A stretch of 64,000 nt of DNA from positions 1 to 64,000 of IMG/VR virus record IMGVR_UViG_3300044644_001125; one strand, 5' to 3'. The position numbers were made by a program, and so were the translations under genes. How positions within the stretch are numbered: position 1 is the first letter of the stretch; the number at the start of each line of letters is the position of its first letter. The notes under the pieces were generated by a model that made no database searches, was not told the DNA's origin, and was given only the letters and a program-made list of their open reading frames with translations. Shown one piece after another: positions 32,647-48,874 of this stretch.

Positions 32647-34266
32647 ATGGCAAACAGAAACCTAGATGGCGTTCAAATCTTAAGAGCACATCAAAAACAA
32701 CAATACACACTTGAACAAGTACAACACTTAGAGAAATGTATGGATCCAGTTACTGGACCTCTTTACTTCTGCAAAAACTTCTTGAAAATCCAGCATCCAA
32801 CTAGAGGTGCAATCCCATTTGAACCATACGAATATCAAGAAAGATTGATTCAAGCATATAACGATAATACTTATACAATCGCTATGCTACCACGTCAGAT
32901 GGGTAAAGCACTTTGCAACGAAACTCCTGTATTAACACCAAATGGATTCAAACGAATGGGTGATATCCAAGTCGGTGATACTATCTATACACCTAAAGGT
33001 ACACCAACTGAAGTAACTTTCATTACTGAAACGATGACAAATCGTACTTGTTACAATGTTGAATTCTCACACGGTGAAAGTATTATCGCAGATGCACACC
33101 ACCTTTGGACTTGGTTTGACCCAGGCTACAATGACTTGATTACTGAAAATACCGAATACCTGATTAAACGTGTTAATAAGTTTAAAACGTCAAACATTAG
33201 ACTCAGTATGGATTATACAAAACTCATTGAATTCGACAAGAAACCAATGAAACTAGATCCATATCTAATCGGTATTTGGATGGGTAATGACCCAGAAGTA
33301 AATCAAATGAGATGCTATACTCACGAATATACCAGATATAACGAGATGTTTAAATCCCATGGTCTTACTATGTCTGAATTAACACTAAGAAGACACAGTA
33401 AACGATTGGGTATGTACTCAGTTAATAACCTAGAGTTCATGGTAAAACCGGTTCTTAATAAGGATAATACCTTACCAGAAGAGCTCATGCTCAATGATTC
33501 TGAAACTCGTTTACAAATCATTAGAGGTATTATGGATGTATGCGGTAGTGTATCAGATACTGGGTACTGTACTTTTAAACATACCAATGAGAAAATCATG
33601 GAACAAACACGTTTCATGTTGGCTACTCTAGGTGTTAAAACCCATTTGAAAGTCGAAGTCTGTAAGTTTAAAACCAATTACTATCTTAATTTTTCAACTA
33701 AAGACTTAAGACTATTCAATCTGTCTGAGAAAGTTGATAAAGCTGCATTGAGTAATCACTTCCCAAATAATGAAAGAGTTTATATCAAAAGCATTACCAA
33801 AGCAAAATCAGTACCAGTTAGATGTTTACAAGTGGCAGATAGAAAACATCTATTCCTAGTGGGTAAAACTCTAGTACCAACACATAACACTACTTGTGCA
33901 TGTGGATTCTTGCTCTGGTATACCATGTTTGTTCCCGAAGCCCAAGTACTGATTGCTGCTCACAAATACGCCGGTGCACAAGATATTATGAACCGATATC
34001 GATATGGCTACGAGAACTTACCAGACTTTATCCGTGCCGGTGTTTATTCATATAACAGGAATACAATCGAATTTGATAATGGTGCTCGTATCCAAGCAAC
34101 TACCACTACTGAAAATACAGGTCGAGGTAAGTCGCTCTCTTTGATTTATTGCTTAGATGGAGATACTACTGTTCGTATCAGACACAAGGAAACCCTTGTA
34201 GAAGAAGAGATATCACTCGCTGCGTTATATCAACGACTTGACCCAGCGGTACAGGTTATTGCTTAA
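32647..34266 (+). CDS. terL: Terminase large subunit, fragment 1 (N-extein, cis intein, extein, split-intein N-part)
   Basis: gp17-like IQHP.RG.IPF.PYEYQ; Walker A PRQMGK|TT interrupted by an intein; GRGKSLSLIY followed by CLDGDT intein start and a stop codon. Confidence 0.93.
   Translation: MANRNLDGVQILRAHQKQQYTLEQVQHLEKCMDPVTGPLYFCKNFLKIQHPTRGAIPFEPYEYQERLIQAYNDNTYTIAMLPRQMGKALCNETPVLTPNGFKRMGDIQVGDTIYTPKGTPTEVTFITETMTNRTCYNVEFSHGESIIADAHHLWTWFDPGYNDLITENTEYLIKRVNKFKTSNIRLSMDYTKLIEFDKKPMKLDPYLIGIWMGNDPEVNQMRCYTHEYTRYNEMFKSHGLTMSELTLRRHSKRLGMYSVNNLEFMVKPVLNKDNTLPEELMLNDSETRLQIIRGIMDVCGSVSDTGYCTFKHTNEKIMEQTRFMLATLGVKTHLKVEVCKFKTNYYLNFSTKDLRLFNLSEKVDKAALSNHFPNNERVYIKSITKAKSVPVRCLQVADRKHLFLVGKTLVPTHNTTCACGFLLWYTMFVPEAQVLIAAHKYAGAQDIMNRYRYGYENLPDFIRAGVYSYNRNTIEFDNGARIQATTTTENTGRGKSLSLIYCLDGDTTVRIRHKETLVEEEISLAALYQRLDPAVQVIA
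32908..33888 (+). mobile_element. Class-3-type cis intein (327 aa) with degenerate LAGLIDADG domain, in the terminase Walker A
   Basis: Starts with Ala (ALCNETPV), block B HHLW, block F VRCLQV, ends PTHN followed by Thr; LDPYLIGIWMGND and RGIMDVCG endonuclease-like blocks. Confidence 0.85.
34150..34266 (+). mobile_element. Split intein 1, N-fragment (38 aa)
   Basis: CLDGDTTVRIR...EEISLAALY then stop, just before the Walker B acidic residues. Confidence 0.88.
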
Positions 34267-34330
34267 TGGCTCGCTGACGCTCGCACATATAATATGAAAC
34301 TAAAAGACGTAACTATCCATTAATAGAATA

Positions 34331-34683
34331 CTAAAAGATGATTGTCTTATTAGGTATATTATCTTTTAGTTATGATGTTCTTATAGATGATGTTTATATT
34401 TGATCTATTATCTTTTAGTTATGATGTTCTTATAGATGTTTGTATTAATGGTCTTATTGATGTGAGTTATTAGATAATTATCTTTTAGTTCAAAATGTAT
34501 GGGTTCGTATGGAGTTTATAACGTATGTGTGCATCTGGTAAAAAGCTATAATGTATGGGTTCGAATAGATCTAAAATGTATGTGCGCGAATGGAAACAGC
34601 TATAAGGGAATTATCTTTTAGAGTCAAAATGCGTGTGCGCGTGGCTTAAGCAGGTAGGAAGTAATGGATTCATTATCTTTTAG
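34331..34683. repeat. AT-rich repeat array containing ATTATCTTTTAG x5 and longer direct repeats
   Basis: Copies at 34358, 34407, 34477, 34610, 34672; 33-bp direct repeat 34357-34389 and 34406-34438; 14-bp AATGTATGGGTTCG at 34494 and 34550. Confidence 0.85.
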
Positions 34684-34749
34684 AATTATCTTATACGCTC
34701 CTACTATAATAGATTTAAGATAGAATCATTAATAGCTTTAATAATAGAG

Positions 34750-35230
34750 GCTTTTAATACTGCGGTATGTGGAGCGGAACATCTTAACCCGAAAAACTCG
34801 GGTTAATTCAAAGCATTCTCAATTGGGTTTTAAGTAATTGAAAAGTTCTGCGTACAAGTATCGCATCACAGCAGCAGTAGAGCGTTACAGAGGCGGTCAG
34901 CCGGTACCTCGAGCTCAGTCTTATTAATCTGACGGTGGCCACATGAACAACTGCTACCTCATTCATGCGACGTGGACTTTTTAGTCCATCTTTAGCCTTT
35001 GTAAATCTTTTCGCTATAACACAAATGGGTTGTATGAAGGCATATCCCATAACTCATCTGGTGGGGTAGTGTGTTATATCTCCGTTGCTAACTTCGGAAC
35101 TTCCATCCCTTGTGATCAAGTAGTCCAAGGTTTAAGGGCATCATATCAGTCGCCGATGCAGGCTTTCTTAGCAATTCTCTCGTCTTTCTATGTTCTATCT
35201 AGTAATTCGACGAGCAAGGTTTGGCTGGTG
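34750..35230 (-). ncRNA. Candidate large structured non-coding RNA (family unidentified, ends approximate)
   Basis: No credible ORF; more GC-rich than flanks; stems at 34784-34806, 34890-34910, 34973-34988, 35015-35078, 35108-35130, 35179-35214; strong promoters upstream on the minus strand. Confidence 0.55.
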
Positions 35231-35240
35231 CCTAAAAGAT

Positions 35241-35339
35241 AATAGACTTGGTGTCGGTATTGTATATAGTTCAAATAGACTTTGTGTCGGTAGGATTTGG
35301 TCTCTAAAAGATAATTGAGTAATAGACTTGGTGTCGGTA
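35241..35339. repeat. Three copies of a 19-bp repeat AATAGACTT(G/T)GTGTCGGTA
   Basis: Copies at 35241, 35274 and 35321, interleaved with CTAAAAGATAAT at 35232 and 35304. Confidence 0.85.
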
Positions 35340-35386
35340 TGGATTTGAGATGGTCTCGGTAAACTGCTTTTGTGTAAGTATGATTA

Positions 35387-35415
35387 ATTATAACTTAGAT
35401 TATGGGGACTGTCAA
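35387..35415 (-). promoter_or_regulatory. Consensus sigma70 promoter facing the non-coding region
   Basis: Minus strand TTGACA (35415-35410), 17 bp, TATAAT (35392-35387). Confidence 0.9.
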
Positions 35416-35457
35416 CCTATTTTTCAAGGTATCTCGGGTAATTCTTTAGTATAGTTA

Positions 35458-35486
35458 ATTGTAATCTATTTTGATTGGGTTGTCAA
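35458..35486 (-). promoter_or_regulatory. Second tandem sigma70 promoter
   Basis: Minus strand TTGACA (35486-35481), 17 bp, TACAAT (35463-35458). Confidence 0.85.
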
Positions 35487-35489
35487 CTG

Positions 35490-36203
35490 TTATTTTGGAA
35501 GATTATCGAAAAACTCTGTGTATGGGTCGTTTTTGATATTACTGTACTCAACTCGCAATCCTTTTAATTTTTCTTCCTGACCAGCAATTAGATCATCAAA
35601 ATTGCCATTTTGATTATGTTTATGTAATGCTTCTATTGCTGCTTTTATTTGTTCAGCTTGGTTTTTGATGCCTTCTAATTGAGTATTAACTAGTTTATTA
35701 TGATATTCAATTGCTTTGGCTTTGGTCGCTTCCCAGTCATATTCCACTCCATTGGAATTAAGAAACTTTTCTACTTTAGCCTTGCGACCGTATTCGTTCG
35801 CAACTCTCTGCAAATTACCCATTTCATCCCTAGCCAACATCTCATCAATGTTAGCCTGTAGGTCATCAACAAAACGAATCTTAGATTTTATTTTCTCACT
35901 TTGTTGTTTCGGTGCACCTTCAGCCGAACGCTCCCATTGAATAACGGTACCACCTTTATTTGTTGTTTTTTCAACTCTGGTAATACCAATATCGTCTAAG
36001 TAGAAATCAATACGAAATTGATTCTTATACATAGAACCTTGGGTAGAAAAGAACTTTTCACCGTCTAAGTCGTGTGCGTTTGATAGGATGAATTTAGCTT
36101 GTTTCTCTGATTTAAACTTACCATCATTGTAATCTTTTAAACCATATAATGTTTTTGCAATATCACCCTCTGTGGCTTCTGCTAATATGTCTTTTACTTG
36201 CAT
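35490..36203 (-). CDS. Putative internal head protein, coiled-coil C-terminus
   Basis: MQVKDILAEA N-terminus; GAGGA RBS; late-type ATAAATA on the minus strand at 36236-36230. Confidence 0.6.
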   Translation of the reverse strand: MQVKDILAEATEGDIAKTLYGLKDYNDGKFKSEKQAKFILSNAHDLDGEKFFSTQGSMYKNQFRIDFYLDDIGITRVEKTTNKGGTVIQWERSAEGAPKQQSEKIKSKIRFVDDLQANIDEMLARDEMGNLQRVANEYGRKAKVEKFLNSNGVEYDWEATKAKAIEYHNKLVNTQLEGIKNQAEQIKAAIEALHKHNQNGNFDDLIAGQEEKLKGLRVEYSNIKNDPYTEFFDNLPK

Positions 36204-36253
36204 TGAATTTCCTCATTTAACTGATCTTGTATTTATGATGCATCAATTATCTT

Positions 36254-36532
36254 TTAGACATCACGAACAGCAAGCACACTCCATTTACAACTTTTCAAAT
36301 CAGTGCCACGTTCAACAAGATCTGGAAATGGATATAAACTTTTAGCATGTCGATCACCATGCTCTTCACTCGACCAATACCAGTGAATTCCTGTAAATGC
36401 TCTAAACTCCCTAAACTCTGCTTCAGTTGGCAATCTCCAACCAATTCTACCATCTACATTTAATGCAAAACAGTAAAATTTGGCAGTATCCCAGTCCATG
36501 CTTAATTTGGTTTCGTAGAATTCTAGGGTCAT
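36254..36532 (-). CDS. DUF1566/Lcl C-terminal (C-type-lectin-like) domain protein
   Basis: WDTAKFYC..L...GWRLPTEAE, YWSS, VLAVR; start at 36532 by TAATG coupling. Confidence 0.75.
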   Translation of the reverse strand: MTLEFYETKLSMDWDTAKFYCFALNVDGRIGWRLPTEAEFREFRAFTGIHWYWSSEEHGDRHAKSLYPFPDLVERGTDLKSCKWSVLAVRDV

Positions 36533-37131
36533 TAGAGATCTCTTACCGGGTGAATTAAACACGTTTCATCCGGATCATTGCCAATATCATCGGAATGCCA
36601 AAAATAAGCATGCATAAGGTTAAAGTAATAACATTCTTCCGGTGTGGGAAACCGCCAGCCAACCTTACCATCGATATTAAGTGAAAAACAATACATCTGC
36701 GCTTCTTCTAATGATGTAGCTTTGATATACGACTGTGGTGCTAACTCAACTGGTATGTTATAAAATGGTTCTATTGTTCTAACAGCTCTAACATGCAATT
36801 CATAATCATCAAACCCCTCATCGTCTGAATCAGTTAGGAAGTCGTAGGTTTGTATAACAGTAAGCGGTTCTTCTTCTGATTCAACTATTCTATAACTACT
36901 AGACCAATATTCTGGAGTCTCAACCGATCCATCAACATACGCATCGCATAACTTAGTATCTAATCTAACTTCTTGTATGTATTGTTCCCGTATTATGTAC
37001 ATTTCGATGATGGTAGGTAACCTCCAACCTTCTTTATCATCTGCTACAAGATTGTCACAGTATTCAAGGGCATCTTCCCAAGTCGATACAACCTCTGTGC
37101 TTTTTGGTGCTAATTCTAAGTTAAAGTTCAT
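36532..37131 (-). CDS. Tandem DUF1566/Lcl domain protein
   Basis: WEDALEYC...GWRLPT..E...YWSSS...VRAVR followed by a second EEAQMYC...GWRFPT..E domain; ATG at 37131. Confidence 0.75.
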   Translation of the reverse strand: MNFNLELAPKSTEVVSTWEDALEYCDNLVADDKEGWRLPTIIEMYIIREQYIQEVRLDTKLCDAYVDGSVETPEYWSSSYRIVESEEEPLTVIQTYDFLTDSDDEGFDDYELHVRAVRTIEPFYNIPVELAPQSYIKATSLEEAQMYCFSLNIDGKVGWRFPTPEECYYFNLMHAYFWHSDDIGNDPDETCLIHPVRDL

Positions 37132-37164
37132 ATAGATATCAAAATGTAAGTTATTGGTATGGTA

Positions 37165-37193
37165 ACTATACCATATAAGTAGACGTGACGCAA
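37165..37193 (-). promoter_or_regulatory. Sigma70-type promoter for the DUF1566 pair
   Basis: Minus strand TTGCGT (37193-37188), 17 bp, TATAGT (37170-37165). Confidence 0.6.
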
Positions 37194-37264
37194 ACATTAT
37201 CTTTTAGAAATGTTAAATAGAGGTAATAAACTAATTACTTATTAATTTCAAACGGTGAACTATC

Positions 37265-38894
<1,630 letters not shown>

Positions 38895-38936: not shown

Positions 38937-39965
38937 ATGAGCAAGGCAACCTATTTATTATCTCCAATTGACGGAAACACCTACTGCAAAACCAATGGTA
39001 AGTTCACTATACATCTTAGGGAATATGGACTTACCTATCAAGATTATTATGAAACTTATATACTTGGGTATTGTCCAATATGTGCATGCGGGTCTAAAGT
39101 TACGATGAATGTATCGACCCATTTACATCCACGCAGTTGTGGAAAGCCTGTGTGTGTTGGTAAAATCACCAGCGATGTTAAACAGAATTGGACTCCGGAA
39201 CAGAGAGAGCAGGATTCAGCCAATAAGAAAGCCGCAAGTGCTGCAGAGACACCGGAGAAAAAACAACAGCGAAACGATAAACGTAAAGCAACTAACTTAA
39301 AAAATCACGGCGTTGAGTGGTCTACCCAGTCGGAAACAATGAAATCTAAGTCAAAACAGACTAAACTTGTACGACACGGTGATGAAAACTACAATAACAG
39401 CAAGATGATCAGTGCAACCAATCTAGCAAAACCTAGAGAGGAAAAAGACGAGATCAATGAAAAACGACGTCTAACTAATTTAGATATGCATGGTGTCGAA
39501 AACTGCTGTTTGATTCCGGGAAATTCGAGTAAATCGAATAAAGGAAACGCGAAGATTAAAGATTACACATTGCCATCTGGTAAGGTTATTGGAGTTCGTG
39601 GTTACGAACCAAATGCAATGGATACCTTATTAGAATCGTATCAAGAATCTGATATATTGATGCACGATGATTACTCAGAATATCAAATCCAAGTTTTCAG
39701 CTATACCTCGGACAAAGGTAGAATCGCGAAATACTACCCAGACATTTATATCCCTTCGGAAAACCGAATTATTGAGATCAAAAGTCAATGGTGGTGGGAT
39801 GGTAATGGTAAGACTGACGAAAAATATACAACCCGACTTGCGAATAATCTTAGAAAAAGGCAAGCCGTGATTGATGCTGGATATAATTACGAAGTGTGGT
39901 TATTTACTAGCAAGACAAACTATAGAGTACTAAAAGATGATGCAGACTTTCAAACCAAACACTAA
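38937..39965 (+). CDS. Free-standing PD-(D/E)XK-type endonuclease
   Basis: VRGYEP, YYPDIYIPSENRIIEIKS motif; N-terminal Cys motif and K..TNL..HGVE repeats; TTAAATA at 38891-38897. Confidence 0.72.
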   Translation: MSKATYLLSPIDGNTYCKTNGKFTIHLREYGLTYQDYYETYILGYCPICACGSKVTMNVSTHLHPRSCGKPVCVGKITSDVKQNWTPEQREQDSANKKAASAAETPEKKQQRNDKRKATNLKNHGVEWSTQSETMKSKSKQTKLVRHGDENYNNSKMISATNLAKPREEKDEINEKRRLTNLDMHGVENCCLIPGNSSKSNKGNAKIKDYTLPSGKVIGVRGYEPNAMDTLLESYQESDILMHDDYSEYQIQVFSYTSDKGRIAKYYPDIYIPSENRIIEIKSQWWWDGNGKTDEKYTTRLANNLRKRQAVIDAGYNYEVWLFTSKTNYRVLKDDADFQTKH

Positions 39966-40278
39966 GAACTTAAAGGTACTAACACCAGATGGATTCCAAC
40001 CCTTCTCTGGTGTTAGTATGCGTGGAGTTAAACCAATTATTCGATTAACATTCGAAAAAGACGTATGGATAGAATGCACACCTGAGCATAAATTCTACAT
40101 CTCTGAAACTGAACAAAAGTTAGCAAGTGATTTTAGGATTGGTGATACCATATTAAGTTCGGATGGTGATTTGAAGTTAATCACTTCTGAAGATTTGGGT
40201 AGAACTGAACCAGTATACGATTTAATTGAAGTTGCTAACGGTCATCGGTTCTATGCGAATTCACTATTAAGTTCGAAT
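39937..40278 (+). mobile_element. Split intein 2, C-fragment (114 aa)
   Basis: VLTPDGF, block B CTPEHKF, FRIGD, block F VYDLIEV, HRFYANSLLSSN|C. Confidence 0.88.
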
Positions 40279-41040
40279 TGCGAATTCTTAATTGATGATG
40301 AAACGTTAATTAATTCGGTTAAATTGGCAGAACTAAAGGGTGTAGATCCGCTATTGACGATGGGGCAAATGCGTTGGTATAAAGAAATCAATCCATTGTC
40401 AACCTATCTAGTATCACTAGACCCAAGTTTGGGAACAGGCGGTGACTTTGCTGCTATGCAAGTATTTGAAATGCCTAGTATGGAACAAGTGGGTGAATGG
40501 CGACACAATACCACACCTGTTCAAACGCAGATAAGGCATTTGAGGGATATCTTAAAACACATCCATGATAGTGGTATTGAAAAATCTGGGTTTGCTCCAA
40601 CTACATATTACAGTATGGAGAATAATACACTAGGTGAAGCAGCCCTAATCGTTATTGAGAGTATTGGTGAGGAGAACTTTCATGGGTTATTCCTGTCAGA
40701 ACCGATTAAGAAAGGGCATATCAGGAAGTTCCGTAAAGGGTTTAATACCACACATAGAACAAAAGTTACTGCATGTAGTCAGTTTAAAAACTTATTAGAA
40801 ACTGGTAAGATGAAGATTAACTCTAAAGTTCTAGTATCTGAGTTGAAAACTTATATCTCAAGGGGTGTTGGGTTTGGTGCTAAATCAGGTGAGAATGACG
40901 ATTTGATTTCTGCAGTTCTTCTTATTATAAGAATGGCAACTGTATTATCTGATTGGGATCCATCGATATATGATAAGATGTCTGAGAAACTGACTGAAGA
41001 TCAGATGCCATTGCCTATCTTTATTAGTAGTGGATTCTAA
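39937..41040 (+). CDS. terL: Terminase large subunit, fragment 3 (IntC2 plus C-terminal nuclease domain)
   Basis: 114 aa intein C-part ending SSN, then CEFL, LDPSLGTGGDFAA, ENNTLG, GENDDL RNase H-like nuclease motifs. Confidence 0.93.
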   Translation: MMQTFKPNTKNLKVLTPDGFQPFSGVSMRGVKPIIRLTFEKDVWIECTPEHKFYISETEQKLASDFRIGDTILSSDGDLKLITSEDLGRTEPVYDLIEVANGHRFYANSLLSSNCEFLIDDETLINSVKLAELKGVDPLLTMGQMRWYKEINPLSTYLVSLDPSLGTGGDFAAMQVFEMPSMEQVGEWRHNTTPVQTQIRHLRDILKHIHDSGIEKSGFAPTTYYSMENNTLGEAALIVIESIGEENFHGLFLSEPIKKGHIRKFRKGFNTTHRTKVTACSQFKNLLETGKMKINSKVLVSELKTYISRGVGFGAKSGENDDLISAVLLIIRMATVLSDWDPSIYDKMSEKLTEDQMPLPIFISSGF

Positions 41041-41140
41041 AAGATAATCGAACCCAATAAACCCAAGGCTAAAAGATAATTGAAACCCACGTACCATAAG
41101 CTAAAAGATAATTGACCTACCATAAACTATTATCTTTTAG
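41037..41140. repeat. Array of the 12-bp motif: three copies at 32-bp period plus one inverted copy
   Basis: CTAAAAGATAAT at 41037, 41069, 41101; ATTATCTTTTAG at 41129. Confidence 0.9.
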
Positions 41141-44793: not shown

Positions 44794-44899
44794 ATATTTA
44801 TGAACGGTTTTCATTATCTTTTAGCTAAATACCTAGTCTAAAAGATGATTTTCTCAAGGTGGTTTTCATTATCTTTTAGATAAATACAATATATGAAGT

Positions 44900-44974
44900 G
44901 CCGGTGTAGCTCAGTAGTAGAGCAGCTGTCTAGTAAACAGCAGGTCATGTGTGCAATCCACATTACCGGCTCCA
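44900..44974 (+). tRNA. tRNA-Thr (anticodon AGT), CCA encoded
   Basis: Acceptor GCCGGTG/TACCGGC, D stem GCTC/GAGC, anticodon stem GCTGT/ACAGC with loop CT-AGT-AA, T stem ATGTG/CACAT, ends TCCA. Confidence 0.9.
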
Positions 44975-45075
44975 GATATAAATCAATGACTTACGACTAA
45001 AAGATAATAGTTCCCTAAAGCTAATCAATAGGTAACCTGTTCGAATCAAACATAAAGCAATACATAAAATAAACC

Positions 45076-48377: not shown

Positions 48378-48836
48378 ATGACCAACTGGTATGACAAGGT
48401 TTCACGGGATATAACGAATGTTCCACACGCAATTACCCATTATCGGTCAGAATTAGGTTCTGCCAAGGTAGACGTTAAGATTTCTGGTAGTATTGAACGT
48501 GCGGCAGCTGCAATGCCAGGGATTGTTGAAACACGTTTTTGCCAGTTACAAGAGATTGAGGCTATATTGGAATACTTGAACATTTGTTTGAAGCAGATGA
48601 AAAGTCAACATTTCCAAAAGTATCTTGAAACATATCAACGTTCTTTGAGTAGTAGAGATTGTGATAGATATGTAGATGGAGAACAAGACGTGGTTGATTT
48701 TGAGATTTTAATCAATGACGTTGCCTTACTCAGAAATCAGTATCTTGGTGTTATCAAAGGATTGGATATTAAGCAATGGCAGTTATCCAATATTGTTAAG
48801 TTAAGAACTGCTGGATTGGATGATGCGTCTATCTAA
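48378..48836 (+). CDS. uvsY: Recombination mediator UvsY
   Basis: QLQEIEAILEYL, F.KYLE.Y.R.LS, YVDGE, RNQYLGVIKGLD.KQWQL; downstream of uvsX. Confidence 0.85.
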   Translation: MTNWYDKVSRDITNVPHAITHYRSELGSAKVDVKISGSIERAAAAMPGIVETRFCQLQEIEAILEYLNICLKQMKSQHFQKYLETYQRSLSSRDCDRYVDGEQDVVDFEILINDVALLRNQYLGVIKGLDIKQWQLSNIVKLRTAGLDDASI

Positions 48837-48874
48837 AAGATAATTGATACACTTTGTATCCACCATTGACACGG

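Follow-up and report, generated by a model that had tools for sequence, protein, structure and literature searches.

A large structured RNA gene in a jumbo phage

What is encoded in a gap of 1.22 kb, inside a split terminase locus, that contains two almost perfect promoters but only short ORFs? The sequence-only reading of this locus proposed a large structured noncoding RNA under tandem consensus promoters, transcribed antisense within the terminase locus, abundant early in infection and of unknown class. We examined the gap and its surroundings in the window, the 64 kb stretch of phage DNA that was analysed. The region is a gene for a roughly 450-nucleotide, intricately folded RNA, as proposed. 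However, the RNA is not of wholly unknown class, as its 5′ third is the Polynucleobacter-1 motif (Rfam RF01718), an orphan motif described in 2010 (PMC2864571). Moreover, 'abundant early RNA' remains an inference from promoter quality and copy number.

The locus and its promoters

The gap separates the stop of terminase part 1 from the stop of an ORF on the opposite strand encoding a 237-residue protein of unknown function (Table 1). The −35 boxes of the two σ70-type promoters are 71 bp apart. Only eight sites in the whole 64 kb reach 11 of 12 matches or better, and the downstream promoter is the only perfect one. The GC content rises to 0.42–0.45 over 34800–35200, compared with 0.22–0.37 in the flanks, and on the RNA strand the core contains 17–28% G, compared with 6–13% in the leader and trailer. 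No intrinsic terminator was found by scanning.

The flanking ORF is the first of three pieces of a T4-type large terminase, which cover profile positions 20–522, 522–634 and 626–871, respectively. The terminase is really split, by atypical split inteins, and the fractured gene also holds a homing-endonuclease gene; Lcl_C-domain proteins are also among the neighbours. The nearest cultured relatives are RaK2-like jumbo phages, with a terminase identity of only 38%. Nucleotide searches of the cassette against 50 697 phage records found nothing, in either near or distant mode.

Table 1. Features of the RNA cassette and its surroundings, in window coordinates. The 12-nt motif is given in RNA sense.
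Feature	Position	Strand	Description
Terminase part 1	32647–34266	plus	First of three pieces; convergent with the RNA
Paralogous cassette	34306–35470	minus	About 1.17 kb; repeated at least four times in the 327 kb phage genome
Trailer	34306–34783	minus	G-poor, AT-rich, conserved among the four paralogues; five exact copies of CUAAAAGAUAAU (34672–34683, 34610–34621, 34477–34488, 34407–34418, 34358–34369), complementary to the leader copies
Structured core	34784–35214	minus	About 430 nt
3′ domain of the jumbo-phage form	34784–34879	minus	Variable hairpin (UUUUCAAUU...AAUUGAGAA) and hairpin AACCCGAG-UUUUU-CGGGUU (34784–34806)
80-residue ORF	34808–35050	minus	Inside the RNA; not a gene
Central domain	34880–34972	minus	Most conserved; contains a long covarying hairpin
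Pseudoknot B	34929–34933 with 34896–34900	minus	GUCAG with CUGAC
Helix GAGC/GCUC	34913–34916 with 34880–34883	minus	Central domain
Helix GAGG/CCUC	34907–34910 with 34890–34893	minus	Central domain
Hairpin UGGACU-AAAA-AGUCCA	34973–34988	minus	Preceded by the conserved A-rich linker AGGCUAAAGA
RF01718 match	35014–35164	minus	Full model (1–141)
Pseudoknot A	35168–35174 with 35085–35091	minus	UUGCUAA with UUAGCAA, the latter in the loop of the third Rfam hairpin
5′ hairpin CUCGUC...GACGAG	35179–35214	minus	Specific to the jumbo-phage form
Leader	35232–35380	minus	G-poor (9–11% G); three copies of ACCGACAC(C/A)AAGTCTATT (35241–35258, 35274–35291, 35321–35338) and two copies of the 12-nt motif, reading AUUAUCUUUUAG (35304–35315, 35232–35243)
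Downstream promoter	35387–35415	minus	TTGACA-17-TATAAT (12/12)
Upstream promoter	35458–35486	minus	TTGACA-17-TACAAT (11/12)
237-residue ORF	35490–36203	minus	Unknown function
Terminase part 2	38160–38894		
Terminase part 3	39937–41040		
tRNA-Thr	44900–44974		Only tRNA gene of the window; bracketed by the 12-nt motif

The 80-residue ATG-initiated frame within the RNA is not conserved. It is cut to 51–55 codons, with other start columns and phases, in the three paralogues described below, while the longest frames in 32 homologues differ in position, phase and length, and indels are not multiples of three. Contigs from three public metatranscriptomes, at 90–99% likeness, lie on 34738–35496, that is on the RNA and its leader. 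None lies on the terminase piece or on 35567–36300, and a single short contig lies at 36406–36494, so that the RNA cassette and almost nothing else is covered in the 4.5 kb stretch compared. As the depths are low (2–11), the contigs carry no strand and DNA carry-over could be included, this is consistent with preferential expression but does not prove it.

Extent, structure and covariation of the RNA

Scanning the window against Rfam 15 gave two hits: a tRNA and Polynucleobacter-1 RNA, the latter with a score of 75.9 bits against a gathering score of 37 (E = 2.6e-14). The three 5′ hairpins, the long helix enclosing two hairpins and the conserved UAAACC, GGGAUGGAA and CACUA boxes of the model are all present. 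A permissive scan of 34200–35600 found no other family, and similar scans of a bacterial and a T4-like homologue gave only RF01718 plus noise. The sequence-only reading, which could not match the RNA to tRNA, tmRNA, RNase P or group I/II intron signatures, was right in this, but it missed the match to RF01718.

Homology and covariation run about 300 nt beyond the 141-nt model. The alignment of the RNA of the window with T4-like phage homologues stays in register for about 430–480 nt. The conserved blocks are an A-rich linker (AGGCAAAAAGA) followed by a hairpin, a long hairpin, a nearly invariant centre, CCGU...AAGAC...GCUCG-AGGUACCGG-NNN-ACCGCCUCUGUAA, a variable hairpin and, in T4-like and bacterial members, a terminal module with the loop GAGCG-NNA-GCGAA and a last hairpin. 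Bacterial members are also about 480–500 nt long and end in the same module. Rfam recognizes only the first 141 nt in these homologues, with 79 bits in a Burkholderiaceae chromosome and 115 bits in a T4-like phage.

RNAalifold on 36 sequences predicted 53 pairs, of which 38 show compensatory changes. As the full-length prediction misses the pseudoknots and several helices owing to misregister in the MAFFT alignment, we placed 93 pairs by hand from reference sequences. Of the corresponding cells 80% are canonical, compared with 38–44% when the 3′ partner is slid by one to three columns and 69% when columns are shuffled, and 55 pairs have changes on both sides, compared with 26–39 in the slid controls. 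These controls are not a formal significance test, and since the sequences are related the counts overstate the number of independent events; in addition, three placements (the long-range ACGCU/AGUGU helix and the last two 3′ hairpins of the T4-like form) were off register and are not relied on. The best-supported helices are pseudoknot A, in which a strand upstream of the Rfam model pairs with a loop inside it (canonical fraction 0.95, five of seven pairs with double changes, shifted controls 21–38%), pseudoknot B, which involves the loop of the GAGG/CCUC hairpin (0.98, three of five), the GAGC/GCUC helix (0.99, three of four), the long hairpin after the TGGACT stem (0.91, all 11) and the inner hairpin of the Rfam long helix (0.96, four of six).

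The stems named in the sequence-only reading fare as follows. The stem TATAACACA/TGTGTTATA and the hairpin inside it are the long helix and inner hairpin of the Rfam model. TGGACT/AGTCCA, GAGG/CCTC and the homologous hairpins covary, the first keeping its position while its stem varies. CTCGTC/GACGAG changes to CTCACC/GGTGAG in two of the paralogues (loci L017 and L070). The stem TTAACCCGA/TCGGGTTAA is present but is identical in three of the four paralogues and differs at one flanking base in L070, so that it is untested; T4-like homologues have a different hairpin at this place. At the variable hairpin of the 3′ domain, the paralogues have different, self-complementary sequences. Finally, the inner CGG/CCG of the stem proposed around GAGG/CCTC is invariant, and the loop beside it (CUGAC) instead forms pseudoknot B.

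Copies, genomic contexts and the flanking motif

A pattern built from three conserved boxes of the Rfam consensus found 106 stretches in viral contigs, all clearly homologous, and a pattern built on the central domain found more than 120 viral loci. There are more than 200 loci in viral contigs, mostly of T4-like freshwater phages. Four of the stretches lie on the window's own contig of 327 kb, one being identical to the window, and the phage therefore carries at least four copies. The cassette is 77–83% identical to the other three (L031, L070 and L017) over its full length. All four share the same layout: tandem promoters, a leader with ACCGA(C/G)AC-type repeats, the RNA and a trailer full of the motif CTAAAAGATAAT. 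A lake metagenome shows three to five times more depth over the cassette than over its flanks, as expected for a multi-copy element.

In T4-like freshwater phages the RNA follows a gene for a 141–145-residue protein that consists of little more than a GIY-YIG domain (PF19835, E = 1.4e-31), at a locus that also holds SbcD-like and SbcC-like nuclease genes. About 90% of the RNA loci in this group have the protein, which is well conserved (79% mean column identity). Its stop codon lies 29–50 nt before the TAAACC box, on the 5′ pseudoknot strand of the RNA, which in these phages may be made as part of that mRNA. A profile search of solved structures gave no hit linking the protein to T4 endonuclease II. 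The association is not obligate: at least 588 viral contigs encode the protein, and among the 80 best, 58 have the RNA by profile search, whereas at least 13 with ample downstream DNA run straight into a membrane-protein gene. A few others have different RNAs there, some keeping the central block with another 5′ domain, and five RNA loci sit behind other genes or behind their own promoter-like sequence. We also tested whether the RNA is an insertion between the GIY-YIG gene and a fixed downstream gene, but the downstream genes are unrelated and this is not shown.

The three-box pattern found 44 stretches in bacterial genomes, of which only eight were real by profile search. All eight are in freshwater Burkholderiales-type assemblies or contigs binned with them, in integrative islands. 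All have a divergent DUF6641 gene upstream and, where the contig extends, a 188–204-residue tyrosine recombinase downstream. In two loci a full-size gene (437–441 residues) lies further upstream; in one (L128) it matches Phage_integrase, while in the other (L145) it has no Pfam match and sits next to the host gene secA. None of these proteins has a homologue in the phage loci. Likewise, no homologue of the GIY-YIG protein, DUF6641 or the small tyrosine recombinase was found in the window or around the other jumbo-phage cassettes. The RNA is thus carried by three kinds of mobile DNA with different neighbours, which argues for a trans-acting product and against a dedicated protein partner or a cis-regulatory role.

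The 12-nt motif CTAAAAGATAAT occurs 32 times in the window, compared with 0.85 expected, mostly at gene borders. Around the RNA it is arranged as an inverted pair, and both the minimum-energy and the centroid folds of 35325–34660 close the whole RNA with a leader–trailer stem (z-score −2.45). The same 5′ AUUAUCUUUUAG...CUAAAAGAUAAU 3′ bracket surrounds tRNA-Thr and every RNA cassette that we examined in this and related phages. We infer that the bracket marks stable RNAs for processing, although the stems are 12–16 bp per copy, which is short for RNase III, a related phage's tRNA has only the 3′ copy and the motif also occurs singly at many gene junctions.

Interpretation and comparison with known RNAs

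We are highly confident that the region is a structured RNA gene, and the following overall scheme is the one that we favour. Host RNA polymerase would transcribe a precursor of about 1.1 kb immediately after infection; the G-poor, unstructured leader and trailer would pair through the inverted motif, and the closing stem would direct the release of a stable RNA. Confidence in this processing step is moderate, and the 3′ end is undefined. The C-rich, G-poor trailer may also serve Rho-dependent termination. The mature RNA would then act in trans as an abundant folded RNA (a scaffold, ribonucleoprotein component or ribozyme) that benefits mobile DNA during infection, although our confidence in any specific activity is low, function being entirely inferred. 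Four copies under the best promoters in the window suggest that the phage invests heavily in this RNA at the start of infection. Tentatively, the Polynucleobacter-1 motif may be the 5′ domain of a previously unrecognized class of large ornate RNA of 450–500 nt, with at least two pseudoknots and modular 5′ and 3′ domains, one of the commoner structured RNAs of freshwater phages. It would have a biochemical activity of its own (as a ribozyme, an RNA-only assembly or an RNA that disarms a host factor) that mobile elements of three unrelated kinds have each acquired.

We may wonder whether the RNA is instead the cofactor (guide, scaffold or regulator) of the small GIY-YIG nuclease, the copies in the window serving a nuclease encoded elsewhere in the 327 kb genome. 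The arrangement in T4-like phages, where the conserved protein has no DNA-binding domain, speaks for this. It is nevertheless unlikely: no GIY-YIG homologue was found in the window, around the other three cassettes or related jumbo-phage loci, or in the eight bacterial loci; gene and RNA each occur without the other; and there is no variable, guide-like segment apart from compensated hairpins.

Still less likely, the cassette could be chiefly a DNA element, a replication origin or a recombination/mobility module, in which strong transcription into an AT-rich, iteron-like trailer primes or opens DNA and the RNA fold is incidental to this phage. The strong promoters followed by direct repeats and a 22% GC stretch at 34300–34500, the four copies per genome and the position inside a fractured gene with a homing-endonuclease gene would fit. 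Yet, the fold is conserved with compensatory changes in phages and bacteria that lack these repeats, the repeat motif is genome-wide and mostly at gene junctions, and the four copies have diverged while keeping their stems.

A cis-regulatory leader or riboswitch, as tentatively suggested for Polynucleobacter-1 in 2010 (PMC2864571), is very doubtful. In bacteria a small ORF does follow the RNA in the same orientation. In the window, however, no gene follows on the minus strand, and this arrangement contradicts the reading. Moreover, downstream genes differ between the four cassettes, between phage lineages and between bacteria, and the RNA of about 450–500 nt ends in its own terminal hairpin in T4-like phages and bacteria. 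That the locus encodes the 80-residue protein can be set aside, given the interrupted and unconserved frame.

Among known systems, group I and group II introns gave no Rfam match, and the RNA is antisense to the terminase, the pieces of which are joined at the protein level by split inteins. ARAGORN finds only the tRNA-Thr. As with the omega RNAs of TnpB, the RNA overlaps the 3′ end of a small nuclease gene in T4-like phages, but compared with TnpB/IscB omega RNAs (including HEARO) this nuclease is GIY-YIG and not RuvC/HNH, there are no transposon ends and no guide-like variable end, the RNA also occurs without the nuclease, and in the window there is neither an adjacent TnpB or IscB gene nor an Rfam match. 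The closing stem resembles those of rRNA operon precursors and of phage early transcripts that are generally held to be cut by RNase III, in that complementary sequences flank a stable RNA; here the stems are short, no cleavage has been shown and the motif also occurs unpaired.

The large ornate RNAs ROOL and GOLLD, which form RNA-only multimers as seen by cryo-EM (PMC12286853), are comparable in size class (hundreds of nucleotides), in having an intricate fold, in their association with phages and mobile DNA and in their unknown function. The conserved sequences differ, and their Rfam models do not match, even at E up to 1 over the region and up to 10 over two homologues.

The closest known system is the Polynucleobacter-1 motif itself, listed in the 2010 survey for Burkholderiales and freshwater or estuary metagenomes as a probable RNA that is possibly cis-regulatory (PMC2864571). 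Positions 35164–35014 match the complete model at twice the gathering score, and the habitat matches too. The full extent, extra domains, pseudoknots, phage distribution and cassette organization of this RNA appear not to have been described in the literature that we could search. The catalogued motif is only the 5′ third of the RNA, and the further conserved and covarying nucleotides include a strand upstream of the model that forms a pseudoknot with one of its loops. Most of the members found here are in phages, and in this jumbo phage the RNA is not placed as a 5′ UTR but has its own tandem promoters and is present in four copies.

Repeated motifs around the RNA cassette

The 12-mer CTAAAAGATAAT occurs at 32 sites in the window, where it is about 38 times over-represented, and it lies mostly at gene borders. 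Moreover, inverted pairs of this motif bracket both the tRNA-Thr gene and the large RNA. It could be a processing signal, a phage promoter element or a protein-binding site. The leader of the RNA cassette also carries repeats of its own, namely two or three copies of ACCGACACCAAGTCTATT, which are found in the window and in the equivalent leaders of L017, L031 and L070 (the three paralogous cassettes). In the paralogues these copies alternate with ACCGAGACCATCTCAAAT. These leader repeats are found nowhere else in the window. Just upstream of the RNA cassette, in the same orientation and inside the terminase gap, two adjacent genes encode Lcl C-terminal (DUF1566-like) domains of unknown function.

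Coordinates of features in the window
Feature	Position	Strand
Large terminase, piece 1	32647-34266	
Large terminase, piece 2	38160-38894	
Large terminase, piece 3	39937-41040	
342-aa protein with DUF7487	38937-39965	
CTAAAAGATAAT, examples from the 32 sites	36246-36257, 41037-41140, 44813-45008, 48833-48844	
Leader repeats ACCGACACCAAGTCTATT	35241-35338	
Lcl C-terminal (DUF1566-like) domain gene	36254-36562	minus
Lcl C-terminal (DUF1566-like) domain gene	36532-37197	minus

Loci in other phages and in bacteria

Other T4-like phages have different noncoding sequences at the same place, after the GIY-YIG gene. In one type, the central GGUACCGG...ACCGCC block is kept but is combined with a 5′ domain that Rfam does not recognise, whereas another type (loci L210 and L163) matches no Rfam family at all. 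These sequences, which in the phage loci L190, L187 and L196 were located about 30-550 nt after the GIY-YIG gene, may be further undescribed structured RNAs. In the alignment of the T4-like homologues, two units, ACUCAGAUAAUG and AUCUAGAUAAUA (columns about 485-500 and 545-560), change in parallel rather than in complement, for example CGCAUAAU with UGCAUAAU, and AGAUGAG with AGAUGAG. This suggests either two equivalent sites for one partner or concerted evolution. It should be noted that the window's form does not show this behaviour.

In freshwater Burkholderiales (the bacterial loci L122-L125, L128, L132, L134 and L145), the RNA lies between a DUF6641 gene and a small tyrosine recombinase, within an element that is itself uncharacterised. 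In two of these loci a 437-441-aa gene lies nearby, which matches Phage_integrase in L128 and has no Pfam match in L145.

The fractured large terminase

The large terminase is a fractured gene in three pieces. The first 112 residues of piece 2 match an engineered atypical split-intein C fragment (PDB entry 6DSL, chain B; E 1.5e-7), and piece 3 has a similar 112-residue head. Piece 1, on the other hand, ends in a 36-residue tail beginning CLDGDT, which looks like a short N fragment. Protein trans-splicing probably rebuilds the enzyme. In addition, the protein with DUF7487 that lies between pieces 2 and 3 shows a weak match to a homing-endonuclease profile, and this is the arrangement described for fractured genes with free-standing endonucleases.
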